A stretch of 64,000 bases of DNA from Blepharisma stoltei ATCC 30299 (GCA_965603825.1 CBFDEM010000013.1:186001-250000), one strand, 5' to 3'; numbered from the stretch's first letter, positions 29,292 to 38,981 are shown. The notes: a model not told the origin generated them from the sequence alone. Numbers and translations: made by a program.

Positions 29292-29536
29292 ATAAGTATA
29301 AAGTTTATTGCGAAATAATAGAGAAATATAATTAATCTTTCAAATAAGTTGGAGAAATAGCTAGAAAAGACTAAATGTTCAAAGGTTGTGCTTAATTTCT
29401 GATATACATCTACTGCAGTATAGCATCTTATACTTAAAATTATTTTTCAGCATTCTATAAGATTGCCAATGACTTGCCAAACATTTGATTACTTTTCATA
29501 AAGGTATTTACCTTTAGCAAAAGTTCTAATTTAAAA

Positions 29537-30205
29537 ATGAAAAATCCAAATGAATTCAAACTTGACGATTATGAACAATCAGCAGAAGAATTTGAAAAAT
29601 ACGTCAATGCACTTGCAAAGAAAAATCCTGTAAATGCACAGAATTCTGAGCTGAAAACTGCTGTGTCTAATTATCTAACTCATTGCAGGCATGAAGAAAG
29701 CAGTGATATGATGATACTCTCAGGGATACTTAGAGCTCTGCGCAACTGAGGAGCTACTCCAGAGCAGAAATCAGAAAACGACCAGCTTTATCAAATCCAA
29801 AGCAAATTGGCTTTACTTTGCCAAAAACAGTCAGAATTCAATATTCAGCTACAAAGGCTGAATGGCCAATTATCAGCTTTAGAAGAGTTGAAAGACTTAA
29901 AAACAAGAGAATCCTTAGGATTTGAAAGTGAGGACGAAGTTGACCAAAGGATCAACTCTTTAGCTTTAAAAATTTCCCAGAATTTGCAGGAAGGCAAAGC
30001 CTCAGAAAATCCTCGAAATTTCCAGGAAATGGAAAAATTAAAATCACTGAGAAACAAAGCTAAAGATGTCCAAGCAGTAAACGAAGAAATTGAAGCTGTC
30101 CTCAATGAAAAATTATCGGTGGAGTCGTTTTTGAAGGATACTGCTGAAGACTATAAAAGTTTGAAAGTTCGTGAAAAATTTTTATTAAATAATAGTAATC
30201 CTTAA
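29537..30205 (+). CDS. Coiled-coil hypothetical protein (~222 aa)
   Basis: Two ORFs joined by TGA=Trp at 29747. Confidence 0.65.
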
Positions 30206-30991
30206 TGAAATCCTATGAAATTACAAAATGAGCAAAAATTTTTCAAAGAGCTGCAGTTCCTGAACCTTATTTGTCAGCAAAATGAATAATTGAGAAAGGA
30301 GAATGCTATAGTAGGCAGCAAAGTAATAGAAACTCAGAAATGATGTATTCAAGATTAAGACATAAGCCAATCCAATACATACTTGGAGATACTTACTTTA
30401 TGGGAAACAGAATTCTTGTAAAGCAGCCAGTCTTGATCCCGAGAGTAGAAACAGAAAAACTCTGCGAGCTTATCCTAGAAGATATGAAAAACAAGCAGCC
30501 TTTCAAATTCCTTGAAATTGGCTGTGGGAGTGGCTGCATTTCAATATCCCTCTGCAAAGTAACCTTAATTATAGAACTCCAATTGTGAAGGGGTAGCTAT
30601 TGATATCTCCCAGCATGCAGTTTCCCTCACAAAGAAAAATGCAAAACTAGTTCTAGGAAAAAAATGGTATAAAAAATTATCAGTCTATGAATCTGATATG
30701 TGGAAATTTTCTCCTGGAAATAAATTTGACCTTATTGTAAGCAATCCTCCTTATATTCCTTCATTAATGATAAATGGACTTGAAAAACAAGTGAAGCTGT
30801 GAGAAGATAATAGGGCTTTAGATGGAGGTGATGATGGGTTTAAATATGTGGAGTTTATTATTAAGCAAGATTGAGTAAAAGAGAATGGAGAGATGTGGTT
30901 TGAGATAGATTCAAGCCATAAGGACAAAGTGGAGGGAGAATATATAGAAGATATATTTGGGAGATGTAGGTATTTAAAAATAAAAAAATAA
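30205..30991 (+). CDS. HEMK1: HemK/PrmC release-factor glutamine methyltransferase (~256 aa); intron 30559-30574
   Basis: PIQYILG, VLIPRVETE, LEIGCGSGCI, DLIVSNPPYI, ALDGGDDG. Confidence 0.9.
30559..30574 (+). other. 16-nt intron GTAACCTTAATTATAG
   Basis: Required to bring NPPY into frame. Confidence 0.88.
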
Positions 30992-31312: not shown

Positions 31313-33406
31313 ATGACAAAGCTTTACAAAATGTGCATATACTCTTCTGTTGGCCTTGCTTCATTTCTTGCAGGAATAGTAATTATATACGCATATTTGA
31401 AGATTAGAGGCCTAAGAAAGCATCCTGGTATGCTCATTCTTTGGCAGTGCGTCGCTCAAACTATAATAGATGGCCAATGAGCATACACAGCTTTTTATTA
31501 TTGAATAACTGGAAGTGAGCCTTCAGATATAGCTTGTCAAATTCAAGGATTAATATCCCTCTATTGCTTCATTATGAGCTGAAATTATAGCTTATGCTTA
31601 AGTATAGAAGTTTTATTAACGATCAGAACTCCTACAAAGAGAAATTATTCAAAGCTTGCCCCTATCTATCACTTTATTTGTAATGCTTTTGCTTTAGCAA
31701 TTTTAATTGCTACCTTAGTCACTGAAGCTGCAGGAAAATCTGCAACTGGTTCCTGCTTTATAAGGGAAGGTACCTGAGCAGTGTAAATTATATATAGGAA
31801 ACTTATGGTTGTGCCATTTGCTATATACTTCCCCTTTAGCATATTCACAGTTGTTTATTCTTGTATAGAAATTCAAAGATCTAGATCTGAAAGGCTAAGA
31901 AATTTTCTTTTAAAACATTGCTTATTTTTAGTTGTTTACACTTTATTTTGAATTCCTATTAGCTTGCATATAGAAATAACTGACGATACAGGGGATAATT
32001 TAGGCTGCTTTTTATATATTTCAATATTCTGTGCAAGTGCTTCAGGCCTAGCTATAAATACTGTGAGACTTTCTGATCCTGTTTTTATCAGATATATTAA
32101 AAGAAAGCTCGGAGGGCTTCATTTTAGGCATGCTCCTGACTTAGTGACCTCTATTTTAACTGATACCCAGCAAGGAGAAAGTGGAATGTCAATGGTAGAG
32201 ACTACAAGGATGAGTTTTTATGAGTCCTCATATACACATGTATTTAATACTATTTTTGCAGATACTGTACTTAATATGCTCATGGCATTTAATGTTGTGT
32301 TTAAAAAGTCAAATAAGGAAATCGATAGAGTCAACTTTGAAAGAAAGGATTCGTGGAGGTAAAAACTAAGCAGCGTTGATTTTTATAAACAATTTTATGT
32401 GTATGAAATTAATCCTGACGATATTTTTAGGCTTGGGCTTGATGAAGTTATTTCAGTTCACTGTATTTATTAAGCAGTTAAAAAATTTTATTGTAAAGTG
32501 ACAGAATGGGCACCGTTAGTGTTCAGAAATTTAAGATATGTAGAAGGGATAACTGATGATGATCTTTTGAGGTCATTTGATGTCGCATTAAATCTTCCGG
32601 CGATAAAAAAAAATACTGGAAATAGAGGCGGCCGAAGTTCGGCTTTTTTTTATTTTTCGTATGATAAAAAATATTTTATCAAAACAATTTCAAAGCAAGA
32701 GCAAAAAGTTTTACTAAGTCTCCTTCTCCCTGAATATCATACCCACATAACTACTCATCCAAACTCCCTTATAGCTCGAACACTAGGCTTTTTCTCTCTA
32801 AAAGTTCAAGGCATTCATCTCAGACTCCTCTTGATGCAAAATATTTTCCCTTTAAATTCCCATAAAATTGCCTTCGACCTAAAAGGAAGCCGACTCGACA
32901 GACAATCCATAAAACACAGTGGAGTGATGTCCACAAAAGATTTAATCGGAGATTGTATATATAAAGACCTAGATTTTTTGCATACCCAAAAGTACGTTTA
33001 TCTTCCATATGATGATGCTTTATTTCTAAAGCAAAGAATATATGATGATGTCCAGCTTTTCAGTAAGCTAAATATTATGGATTATTCATTGCTGCTCGGA
33101 ATTGCAGAAGACCCAGTAAAAGATTGGAGATATTTTATGCAAGCAGCAACGTCTGAGTATGAAAGTGGCTATATTATGGGGATTATTGACTATCTACAGA
33201 TTTATAATAAGGCTAAAAAGTTTGAGACTTTTAGCAAAAATCTAAGAATTGGGATAAAAAAGCACGAAATTAGTTCAATCTGTAGTGAAGAGTACCGGGA
33301 CCGATTTTTAAAATTTTTGGATTCTATAGTGAGTATGGAGCCAAATGAAAATAAAAATAGTTTAATAAGTGAAATTACTTTTTGTTTGTGTGTGATTAAT
33401 AATTAA
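31313..33406 (+). CDS. GPCR-PIP kinase fusion: cAMP-receptor-like 7TM + PIP5K domain (~682 aa); introns 31783-31797, 32359-32373, 32463-32477
   Basis: N-terminal TM helices (LRKHPGMLILW, ACQIQGLISLYCFIMSWNY, IYHFIC, GSCFI); PIPK motifs APLVFRNLR, GGRSSAFFYFSYDKKYFIKT, DLKGS, MDYSLLLG, GIIDYLQ. Confidence 0.87.
31783..31797 (+). other. 15-nt intron GTAAATTATATATAG
   Basis: Removes in-frame TAA. Confidence 0.82.
32359..32373 (+). other. 15-nt intron GTAAAAACTAAGCAG
   Basis: Removes in-frame TAA, linking 7TM part to PIPK. Confidence 0.78.
32463..32477 (+). other. 15-nt intron GTATTTATTAAGCAG
   Basis: Removes in-frame TAA just before the PIPK domain. Confidence 0.78.
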
Positions 33407-34567
33407 ATGGATTCTTCTAGTGAAGAAGAAAACAGCGAAGATGAGAAAACAGAGTTTATATCGCAGACAAGACTAGATATAGATATGACTCAATCAATTC
33501 TTGGGTCAAGTCCTTTCGTTTTTATAGTTCTTGACTGTTTTTATTATATCGCAGGTGAAAAAATCACTGGGGAAGTTTTATTATATTTACCTGAATCTTG
33601 TCCTCCTGGATCACTAGTTTTTATGTCTAGTGGAATAGAAGAGGTCTATCTATATAATGACGATAATAAAGAAAAGCCAGTTGAAGAAGACTGCAACGCT
33701 ATTTTCGACTTAAGAGAAGTTATTAAAGAATGGAGGACAATGATACCTGCAGGACAATATGTTTTCCCTTTTGCATTTAAGCCGCCCCGCTATGCACCCT
33801 CAACTTATTATTTTGCAGGAAACGTTTCGACTGATAAATATATAAAAGCTGAGGTTTCTTATAAAATCACAGCAAAACTGACAATAAATGCGCACCCAGA
33901 AAGATCGTTACAGCATCAAAGAGTAATGATTTTAAGAAACAAAAACACAAGAACTAAGCCAAATCCTATTATGGAAATTACACATATTGTGAGCGGCTGC
34001 TGCTGTACCAAAAAAGGACTTACTCATTTTAAATTGAGTGTATTAGGAGATTGCCATTGTCAATCTGATGGGAAAATCAAATACAATTTGACCCCAGACA
34101 ACTCAAAATGCCTTGCAAAAATCACAAGAGTAATTGGGCATGTTGTGCTAGATCTAGAATTTACCATAAAATCAAGGGTGTATAATATAAGAAAAGATTT
34201 ATCGTCAGTGACTTCTTGAATAAATGTTGAAAATGGAGATATTTTAGACAAAGACTTTGAACATGCAGCAGAAATCGCTCTTCATGAAGATATGAACACG
34301 TCGAGCAATTATTCGGTATTGATAAAATGCACACATTTTATCGAAGTATTAGTGTTTTATGAACTTGCTTGCAATAAAAAACCTGTCAGAATAAGGCTTC
34401 CTGTTCATGTAGATCCTAAGGATTCTGTATTTAAACGTGAAGACCCAGTACTTCCAAGGCCCTGGGAGCCTGATGAAGCTCCTATAATGAATTTCATGAT
34501 ACCTGAGAGTAGGCAGTCAAGCTCCTACTGTGAAACAGTTGCTGATATAAATTCTTCACCTTATTAA
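33407..34567 (+). CDS. Arrestin-fold (alpha-arrestin-like N + C domain) protein (~386 aa)
   Basis: YYIAGEKITGEVLL, IPAGQYVFPFAFKPPRYAPSTY, AEVSYKITAKL, LIKCTHFIEV...IRLPVHV; TGA=Trp at 34217. Confidence 0.82.
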
Positions 34568-34592
34568 CAATAATTTTTTAATTACTATTATT

Positions 34593-35291
34593 ATGAATAT
34601 AAACTCATTCCAATTCTCAACAGAAGACGCTAAGAGAATTATATTGGAAGCTCCTGATACGACAAGAAAGACTGCAGTTGTGCTATTTATTACATTAGGA
34701 TTATTAATTGGAGCTTTGGCTTTTAGTCTGTATGGGATGACTGATTCATGGAACTGTGAGCTTGACTCAAGCAATCAGACATATAATTCTTTATGCCACG
34801 AACTACGAGGCTATGTAGGCTGTCGAAATGTTAAAGGCCCATTAAGCGCAGAAATTATAATCAACTACAAAGGAGAAGCGAAAGCAAGTGCTACTATGGT
34901 ATGCCCATGGGATAATGCTATATCGGAACTAAGAGTTTGCTTTATACTGGTATCAATCCTCAGCATTCTTATGGGAATTAGGAGTTTAACTACGGAAAGC
35001 AAGAAGCAAGCTGACATGGTTGTTCAAGTATCTTATATTTTTTCGTTTTTACTGCTAATGGCAAGCACGTTCGATTTATTTGCTGTGAATGATTCTGAGC
35101 TGAATAACAAAGATGTATGTACGCTCTCAGGAACTTTTGAGTTTAAGAACGTAGAAAGTGAAAGACTCCAGTGTGGCTACACATTTTATTCCATGACAGG
35201 ATTTTATGGCTACCTTTGTGGATTTGGGCTGCTTATAAGTGCTTTACAGCTAAGGACTTGGAAAGATAATTTAACTTTAGACGGCCTTTAA
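34593..35291 (+). CDS. Four-TM membrane protein with Cys-containing loops (232 aa)
   Basis: Four hydrophobic segments; no family recognised. Confidence 0.72.
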   Translation: MNINSFQFSTEDAKRIILEAPDTTRKTAVVLFITLGLLIGALAFSLYGMTDSWNCELDSSNQTYNSLCHELRGYVGCRNVKGPLSAEIIINYKGEAKASATMVCPWDNAISELRVCFILVSILSILMGIRSLTTESKKQADMVVQVSYIFSFLLLMASTFDLFAVNDSELNNKDVCTLSGTFEFKNVESERLQCGYTFYSMTGFYGYLCGFGLLISALQLRTWKDNLTLDGL

Positions 35292-37946: not shown

Positions 37947-38981
37947 TTAGTCATCTTTTATAACCTTTTCGAAGAAATAAGCTTGGATTTCATCTGGTCC
38001 AAGATGATGCATTGCAACTTGATAGAGGCAATACTTTAAATATTCTTCATAGCTGCCAAATTTATTTGAATTTTTCCTCACTTCTTGCGCAATAAAGTGG
38101 GCAAAAAATTGATTAACTTGAATAGAAAGTGGGCTGTTATTTACATCTGCAAATGCCCAGCGGCTGATTATTAATTACTAAGGTGGCTTTTCAGGGTGAA
38201 ACATAGTTGAGAAGATAGGATACTTTTTTGATTCAGCAAGGCTTATATAATATTCGCCTTCTAAGTTCTTAGAAAGCCCCAAAACATTGAAAAACTTCTT
38301 AAGAATAGGTTCAGCTGCATATAAATTACATTCAAAATAGCGAGGCAAAATAGCCCACTGATGATTTTGTGCAGTCATGTTCATAGCTGACATGTAGTAT
38401 AATATTCTTGGATCTACATCTTTGAACCACTTTGACTTAGCCACTTTATCAGTAAAAATGATATTAGTTGTATAATTCATGCCTTTTGATGTTTCTAGTG
38501 TGCATTTATTAGTCAAAACAATTGTGAGGACCTCCCATCCCAAGCAGGTTGTGAATAAAGGAAAATACTCTCCATTATCGTTTTTCTCGATGATTCTCTT
38601 GACTATAAAATCAGCCATTTTCATAAATTGCGTGAATCGCGGTTCCTTATTTTCTTCCCTAATAAACAATTTCGCAGATCCACCTGTAAAAAATACTCCT
38701 ATATAATTTTTACCATTGACTCTCGCCAATAAGTAGTCAATTTCTTCAAAAGTTGAGTTATATTGCAAAGGAATTACCCTCATAGCTCCGCTTTCTATAT
38801 GTTTCACATAAGTAGCTCTAAGATGGGATTCCGCATAATCTGCATAAGCATATTCAATGTCATTGGGGATAGTGAGAACTCCAATCGTAGGCTTAATATC
38901 TTTGAAGTAAAGTGGGTCTGTATACGAATTTAAATAAAGACAACTGACCAAAGGCGCCAATAATACTCCAAGCCAAACCAT
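37947..38981 (-). CDS. GGH: Gamma-glutamyl hydrolase (peptidase C26, ~329 aa); introns 38699-38713, 38315-38329, 38164-38178
   Basis: Signal peptide; PTIGVL, ATYVKHIESGAMRVIP, NGVFFTGG, catalytic TCLGWE and FHPEK. Confidence 0.92.
38164..38178 (-). other. 15-nt intron GTAATTAATAATCAG
   Basis: Removes in-frame TAG. Confidence 0.85.
38315..38329 (-). other. 15-nt stop-free in-frame intron GTAATTTATATGCAG
   Basis: Matches consensus; not required for frame. Confidence 0.65.
38699..38713 (-). other. 15-nt stop-free in-frame intron GTAAAAATTATATAG
   Basis: Removal restores the family motif VNGVFFTGG. Confidence 0.82.

Follow-up and report, generated by a model that had tools for sequence, protein, structure and literature searches.

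A 64-kb stretch of the Blepharisma stoltei ATCC 30299 genome (GCA_965603825.1 CBFDEM010000013.1; G000:C13:186001-250000 in our labels, from an assembly of 41.46 Mb in 64 contigs) was analyzed at a point where two genes on the same strand touch. Gene A, which combines a predicted seven-transmembrane (7TM) part with a phosphatidylinositol phosphate kinase (PIPK), ends directly before gene B, which codes for a predicted alpha-arrestin-like protein. This 64-kb stretch is called the window, and all positions are counted within it. The window has 33% GC, TGA is read as Trp, and the introns are 15 nt long. A preliminary description, made from the DNA letters, had suggested that the two genes might form a signaling unit, possibly even a single protein. 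The features at the junction are listed here.

31313..33406, + strand: gene A, G-protein-coupled receptor (GPCR)-PIPK type (7TM + PIPK), 682 amino acids (aa)
31313-31782, 31798-32358, 32374-32462 and 32478-33406 (stop included), + strand: exons of gene A
33392..33406, + strand: intron-like 15-mer GTGATTAATAATTAA, which includes the stop codon TAA 33404-33406; not an intron
33407..34567, + strand: gene B, predicted alpha-arrestin-like protein, 386 aa; one TGA=Trp at 34217; ends with TAA 34565-34567

The sequence confirmed that the ATG of gene B at 33407 adjoins the TAA of gene A at 33404-33406 in the same frame with a spacer of zero, as the preliminary description had stated. Its figure of 1064 aa for the product that would result from removal of the last 15 nt also agrees with the 682 aa of gene A and the 386 aa of gene B. 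The frame from ATG 31313 holds five in-frame TGA codons, read as Trp, and in-frame TAA codons at 31784, 32360 and 32471, each within a 15-nt GTA...AG string, before the final TAA at 33404-33406. These strings were compared with RNA, which was available as Logan contigs of four runs (X1-X4) from one study. Exactly the three 15-nt introns are missing from these contigs, which are therefore RNA.

31783..31797, + strand: intron 1, GTAAATTATATATAG, 15 nt, with an in-frame TAA inside; spliced out in RNA contigs of X1, X2 and X4
32359..32373, + strand: intron 2, GTAAAAACTAAGCAG, 15 nt, separating the 7TM part from the PIPK part; spliced out in X1 and X3
32463..32477, + strand: intron 3, GTATTTATTAAGCAG, 15 nt; spliced out in all four runs

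In the contig comparison intron 2 was placed at 32357, and the flanking AG makes its placement ambiguous. All three introns sit at identical positions in the gene A orthologue of a relative, represented by Logan contig L041 (SRR24908292), where the intron sequences have diverged, yet a stop codon is present in each.

Gene A is predicted to encode a GPCR-PIPK. Database searches were carried out with TGA-free, single-exon pieces, and the joined spliced protein was used only for hydropathy, motifs and tblastn against chosen loci. The Pfam family PIP5K (PF01504) was matched by 32480-33403 with an expect value (E) of 4.1e-56, and solved PI5P4K and PIP5K structures matched the kinase part with E 6.5e-30 to 1e-22. 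The PIPK motifs are intact (DLKGS at 507, MDYSL at 574 and GIIDY at 608). Kyte-Doolittle analysis of residues 7-243 gave seven hydrophobic segments, six of them strong (1.48-2.12) and one weak (39-57, score 0.84), while no 7TM family was matched in the Pfam search of the TGA-free pieces. The predicted 7TM part and the PIPK part lie in one open reading frame (ORF) and in one transcript, as seen in the X1 contig 31321-33366.

A multi-pass, seven-segment N-terminus, predicted here from hydropathy, followed by a PIPK domain is likewise the plan of the GPCR-PIPK bigrams, which include Dictyostelium RpkA, the oomycete GK proteins and the ciliate GPCR-PIPKs. The central LRxGI motif of the bigrams is merely approximated in gene A: no exact LRxGI was found between its two domains, which hold only FRLGL at residue 362, and an exact LRIGI at 629 is present but lies inside the kinase domain. 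LRxGI is mostly missing from the ciliate members (van den Hoogen et al., 2018, PMC5784254), so the motif does not define the ciliate clade. Ciliate GPCR-PIPKs, often in many copies, were already reported in the same study, and the present genome has about 16 strong PIPK-domain matches. No described bigram has an arrestin domain, and gene A is without one too.

Two minor observations concern the gene A transcripts. In run X2, a 73-nt RNA contig (32329-32401) retains intron 2, and the neighbouring contigs end at the intron edges. Retention would truncate gene A at TAA 32360 and leave the 7TM part without the kinase, but the retained intron could equally represent unspliced precursor or DNA carry-over. 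In addition, single-base differences from the assembly were seen in X2 and X4 contigs only, at 31537, 31558, 32263-32293 and 32500-32521 (2-6 per run within gene A), which could be allelic or strain variation or low-depth assembly noise.

Gene B is predicted, from profile matches and a structural model, to encode an alpha-arrestin-like protein of the arrestin clan. Arrestin_N (PF00339) was matched by 33407-34216 with E 7e-6 and 26.5 bits (cut-off 24.9), and the C-terminal piece 34220-34564, searched alone, gave no Pfam match. Homologues at 40-46% identity carry Arrestin_N plus Arrestin_C, the latter at or near its cut-off. Among solved structures, the profile of the gene B family matched C. 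elegans ARRD, beta-arrestin-1, ARRDC3 and VPS26C. The AlphaFold model of residues 1-270 is all-beta with a mean predicted local distance difference test (pLDDT) score of 87.9, and its second sandwich begins at residue 188. Foldseek placed TXNIP, ARRD-6 and ARRDC3 (E about 1e-9) ahead of VPS26 and of the visual and beta-arrestins, with a probability of 1.00 against TXNIP, ARRD-6 and the N-lobe of ARRDC3 and a target-normalised TM-score of up to 0.72-0.77. Gene B thus resembles the alpha-arrestins (ARRDC3, TXNIP, C. elegans ARRD-6) in its Arrestin_N match and its best structural neighbours, although it is only 12-17% identical in sequence to solved members. It also differs from them in its C-terminal tail, which contains no PPxY or LPxY, whereas alpha-arrestins carry a C-terminal PPxY that recruits a WW-domain E3 ligase; the sole PPRY of gene B is at residue 126, within the N-domain. 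With these matches, the PIPK and arrestin-fold identities proposed in the preliminary description were both upheld.

A CCC motif was observed at residues 198-200 of gene B (33998-34006), between the arrestin lobes. Two of its Cys residues are invariant in the eight closest homologues, and the motif might be a lipidation or metal site.

The RNA contigs were then examined around the junction, together with gene C, which begins 25 nt 3' of gene B. Gene C gave a weak Clc-like (claudin/PMP22-type) match with E 1.7e-4, which is below the cut-off.

34593..35291, + strand: gene C, membrane protein, 232 aa, 25 nt 3' of gene B; 77% identity to L041:7888-8610
ATG 31313, start of gene A: contigs begin at 31321, 31324, 31351 and 31394 (one per run)
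TAA 33404-33406, end of gene A: contigs end at 33273, 33350, 33366 and 33383 (one per run)
ATG 33407, start of gene B: contigs begin at 33425, 33434, 33464 and 33510 (one per run)
TAA 34565-34567, end of gene B: contigs end at 34522, 34530, 34530 and 34552 (one per run)
ATG 34593, start of gene C: contigs begin at 34603, 34644, 34644 and 34672 (one per run)

In run X1, the part of gene A between 31321 and 33366 was contained in a single contig from which all three introns had been removed, and gene B was in another, 33434-34522. The four runs together covered gene B from 33425 to 34552. No contig of any of the four runs bridged the A|B junction (33384-33424), and none carried a 15-nt deletion at 33392, that is, removal of 33392-33406; transcripts across the junction, which the preliminary description had named as a check, were therefore not seen in these contigs. 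Similar gaps were present at the B|C boundary (34553-34602, with its spacer of 25 nt) and before gene A. Since the gaps are alike at A|B, at B|C and 5' of A, the A|B junction behaves as an ordinary gene boundary. Contig depth of A and B was up to 3-fold apart within a run, and the B/A ratio ranged from 0.8 to 3.1 across the four runs. Gene C has separate RNA contigs as well, with the highest depth of the three genes.

The 15 nt that end gene A, 33392-33406, are not an intron. GTGATTAATAATTAA begins with GTG and ends with AA, whereas the three RNA-validated introns begin with GTA and end with AG. The preliminary description had noted that these 15 nt look like an intron and match a real intron, GTAATTAATAATCAG, at 12 of 15 positions. 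The resemblance is as described: GTAATTAATAATCAG has a single occurrence, on the minus strand at 38164-38178, and differs from GTGATTAATAATTAA at 3 of 15 positions. However, the window contains 9 matches to the intron 38164-38178 with no more than three mismatches, where 7.44 would be expected, and a count of 9 was reached in 31 shuffles out of 100, which places a 12/15 resemblance at chance level. In the junction alignment with L041, the bases homologous to 33392-33406 form a non-coding leader directly 5' of the gene B ATG. Fusion of the two genes by splicing was accordingly rejected on the lack of a 15-nt deletion at 33392, the lack of a bridging contig and the chance-level resemblance. A sense reading of the TAA was rejected as well, because every other in-frame TAA of gene A sits in a spliced intron; this agrees with the published B. 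stoltei code, in which UGA=Trp (bioRxiv 10.1101/2021.12.14.471607). The frame shared by A and B has a prior of one in three.

The junction was also compared with the corresponding locus of the relative. The orthologues of A, B and C follow one another in this order in L041, all on one strand, and the source of this contig likewise reads TGA as Trp.

L041:4645-6678: orthologue of gene A, 64% aa identity
L041:6720-7862: orthologue of gene B, 61% aa identity
L041:7888-8610: orthologue of gene C, 77% aa identity, the best conserved of the A-B-C block
33353..33403 of the window, + strand: last 17 codons of gene A, KNSLISEITFCLCVINN, a low-GC tail that neither the orthologue nor the paralogues possess

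In L041, the A orthologue ends with ...SIINAVPETEE-TAA, which is followed by a 38-nt spacer of 18.4% GC and then by B, whose start is the equivalent Met, read in another frame. The spacer contains stops. With a 38-nt spacer and a change of frame, the pair is unambiguously two genes in L041. The start Met of gene B is kept both in the L041 orthologue (MDFSS... compared with MDSSS...) and in the paralogue on contig C9 (MVKSSSSSS...ELISQ), and this conservation supports the gene B start at 33407.

The last 17 codons of gene A are probably former intergenic spacer that is now read through. The GC content of this tail (33353-33403) is 17.6%, against 33.6% in the rest of the coding sequence, and spacers have 8-22% and coding sequences 34-35%. 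Past the conserved SII/SIV motif, gene A has 26 residues, compared with 5-18 in the orthologue and the paralogues. The junction alignment contains an indel of 4 nt immediately ahead of the site where the orthologue has its stop. In the likeliest history, a small change near the 3' end of A would have shifted its stop, and the frame of A would then have continued across roughly 40 nt of former spacer as far as the TAA directly before the ATG of B.

A spacer of zero is the extreme end of a continuum of tiny tandem spacers in this genome. Long ORFs were scanned over 264 kb, made up of the window and two further pieces of 100 kb each, with three intron cases and two doubtful overlaps removed. The scan gave about 38 tandem pairs. 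In about 5 of them the spacer did not exceed 20 nt; among these are the TAATG overlap at 30203-30207 and pairs with 2, 11 and 19 nt between the ORFs. Spacers between -1 and 20 nt are common here. The PIPK paralogue on contig C53 lies 8 and 21 nt from its two neighbours. The B. stoltei macronuclear genome was described as 41 Mb in size and gene-dense, with short intergenic regions, tiny untranslated regions, introns 15 or 16 bp long and UGA=Trp (bioRxiv 10.1101/2021.12.14.471607), and the window agrees with this description in every feature. What sets the A|B boundary apart is that its spacer is exactly zero and in frame, the extreme of the distribution. Because stop and start touch, the 3' end of the A mRNA and the 5' leader of B must lie inside each other's coding sequence; both being short, each would overlap its neighbour by a few bases.

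The TAATG at 30203-30207 was also seen as a boundary of this kind in its own right. The TAA that ends a 255-codon ORF (29438-30202) shares one base with the ATG of a same-strand ORF (30205-30669). There is no tiny-intron candidate near it, and it looks like a second spacer-free boundary, 1.1 kb 5' of gene A.

Together, these data indicate that A and B are two independent, separately transcribed head-to-tail genes in a gene-dense genome, which abut through compaction and a derived extension of the C-terminus of A and give no fused protein, and we assign this reading a probability of about 0.86. Both are ordinary genes of known families. Several points weigh against it. The evidence consists of contigs and not reads, in which transcript ends are invisible and rare forms are dropped; 33384-33424 is covered by no contig, and the contigs of gene A are also broken internally in three of the four runs, though the breaks do not coincide between runs. 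A minor transcript that bridges the junction or is spliced there may thus be compatible with the contig data. Moreover, the base A at 33406 comes from the assembly alone, the spacer statistics were obtained in a crude scan for ORFs that RNA did not back up, and the scenario of a shifted stop is drawn from a two-sequence alignment of AT-rich DNA.

The most far-reaching proposal of the preliminary description was a receptor-lipid kinase-arrestin protein arising by non-canonical splicing, readthrough or recent fission. Such a polypeptide of about 1064 aa could be made at some level by removal of 33392-33406, by readthrough of the TAA, or from an AG allele or an assembly error at 33406, and it would be a striking hard-wiring of GPCR signaling to its desensitising adaptor. 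The common strand and frame, the zero spacer, and a 15-mer that opens with GT and is as long as the local introns speak for it, but a fusion is very improbable here, and the evidence says that it is absent. Neither a bridging contig nor the deletion at 33392 appeared in the four runs, the GTG...AA ends do not conform to the GTA...AG of the validated introns, and the spacer of L041 contains stops and changes the frame. The N-terminus of B and its start Met are conserved as the start of a protein. Homologues of gene B were also searched with HMMER in 1.84 billion protein representatives, which gave 180 relatives, the best 150 of which were examined. None of these 150 exceeded 584 aa, and each was matched from near its N-terminus, so there is no fusion among them. 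On ortholog fusion or adjacency, which the preliminary description had named as informative, the relative supplied adjacency and spoke against fusion. A bicistronic A-B mRNA, in which termination at UAAAUG would be followed by reinitiation, draws on the same direct contact of stop and start codons, but it can be set aside almost entirely: it requires a continuous A-B transcript, which was unseen in the contigs of all four runs, the depths of A and B differ, and the orthologous pair is parted by 38 nt.

Two separate transcripts would also be expected if the GPCR-PIPK and the arrestin-like protein cooperated as a receptor/adaptor pair whose adjacency, possibly with gene C, was selected, for example in arrestin-mediated receptor trafficking or in the sensing of phosphatidylinositol 4,5-bisphosphate (PIP2) made by the GPCR-PIPK. 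Arrestins bind phosphoinositides and receptors, which favours such a pair in a general way. The A-B-C order is also kept in the relative at 60-77% aa identity, whereas nothing in the 64-kb window is homologous to the L041 flanks on either side of the block. We nevertheless regard a selected pair as unlikely. Control loci from the same two genomes (L040 compared with L013, and L042 with L014) were collinear over at least five genes, so a conserved three-gene block is background microsynteny, and the conserved order was discounted as a sign of selection. Tightly packed genes are hard to part without damage, which is a neutral cause of lasting linkage. Within this genome, no PIPK paralogue was found next to an arrestin paralogue: both kinds occur on contigs C53, C27, C56 and C30, yet at least 36 kb apart, and the nearest paralogues of A (PIPK on C53, 57%, and C44, 53%) and of B (arrestin on C9, 47%) have unrelated neighbours. 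In other organisms, the gene in front of an arrestin homologue is of the C2/EF-hand (6-nt spacer), AAA_33 or MCU type, and the flanks of 12 metagenomic loci of B homologues, located with an 8-sequence alignment, contained no A homologue. The variable B/A depth ratio (0.8-3.1) points the same way as weak evidence. The linkage alone thus does not speak for a signaling unit, while the more cautious alternative in the preliminary description, a tightly linked pair of separate genes, holds, with its adjacency kept in one relative, L041. A still broader proposal, that the GPCR-PIPK, the alpha-arrestin-like protein and the Clc-like protein are a functional receptor/adaptor/accessory module in Blepharisma-like heterotrichs, and that the junction might then now and again couple the expression of the two genes, by transcripts that overlap or by readthrough at a level too low to show in contig data, is somewhat less probable than the simple pair.

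Read as two compacted but independent genes, the A|B locus is a clean example of gene packing in heterotrich macronuclei, in which stop and start touch. It also carries a warning for gene prediction and for the reading of sequence by itself: AT-rich leaders readily mimic 15-nt introns, and in-frame abutment is no proof of fusion.

Very tight tandem spacing was observed outside this genome as well. At L036:4994-5001 (Logan SRR31724248), P0003, the best-scoring hit to gene B (41% identity, E 4e-62), begins 6 nt after the C2/EF-hand gene, which codes for 1497 aa. Spacing of this kind is therefore not confined to the B. stoltei genome.

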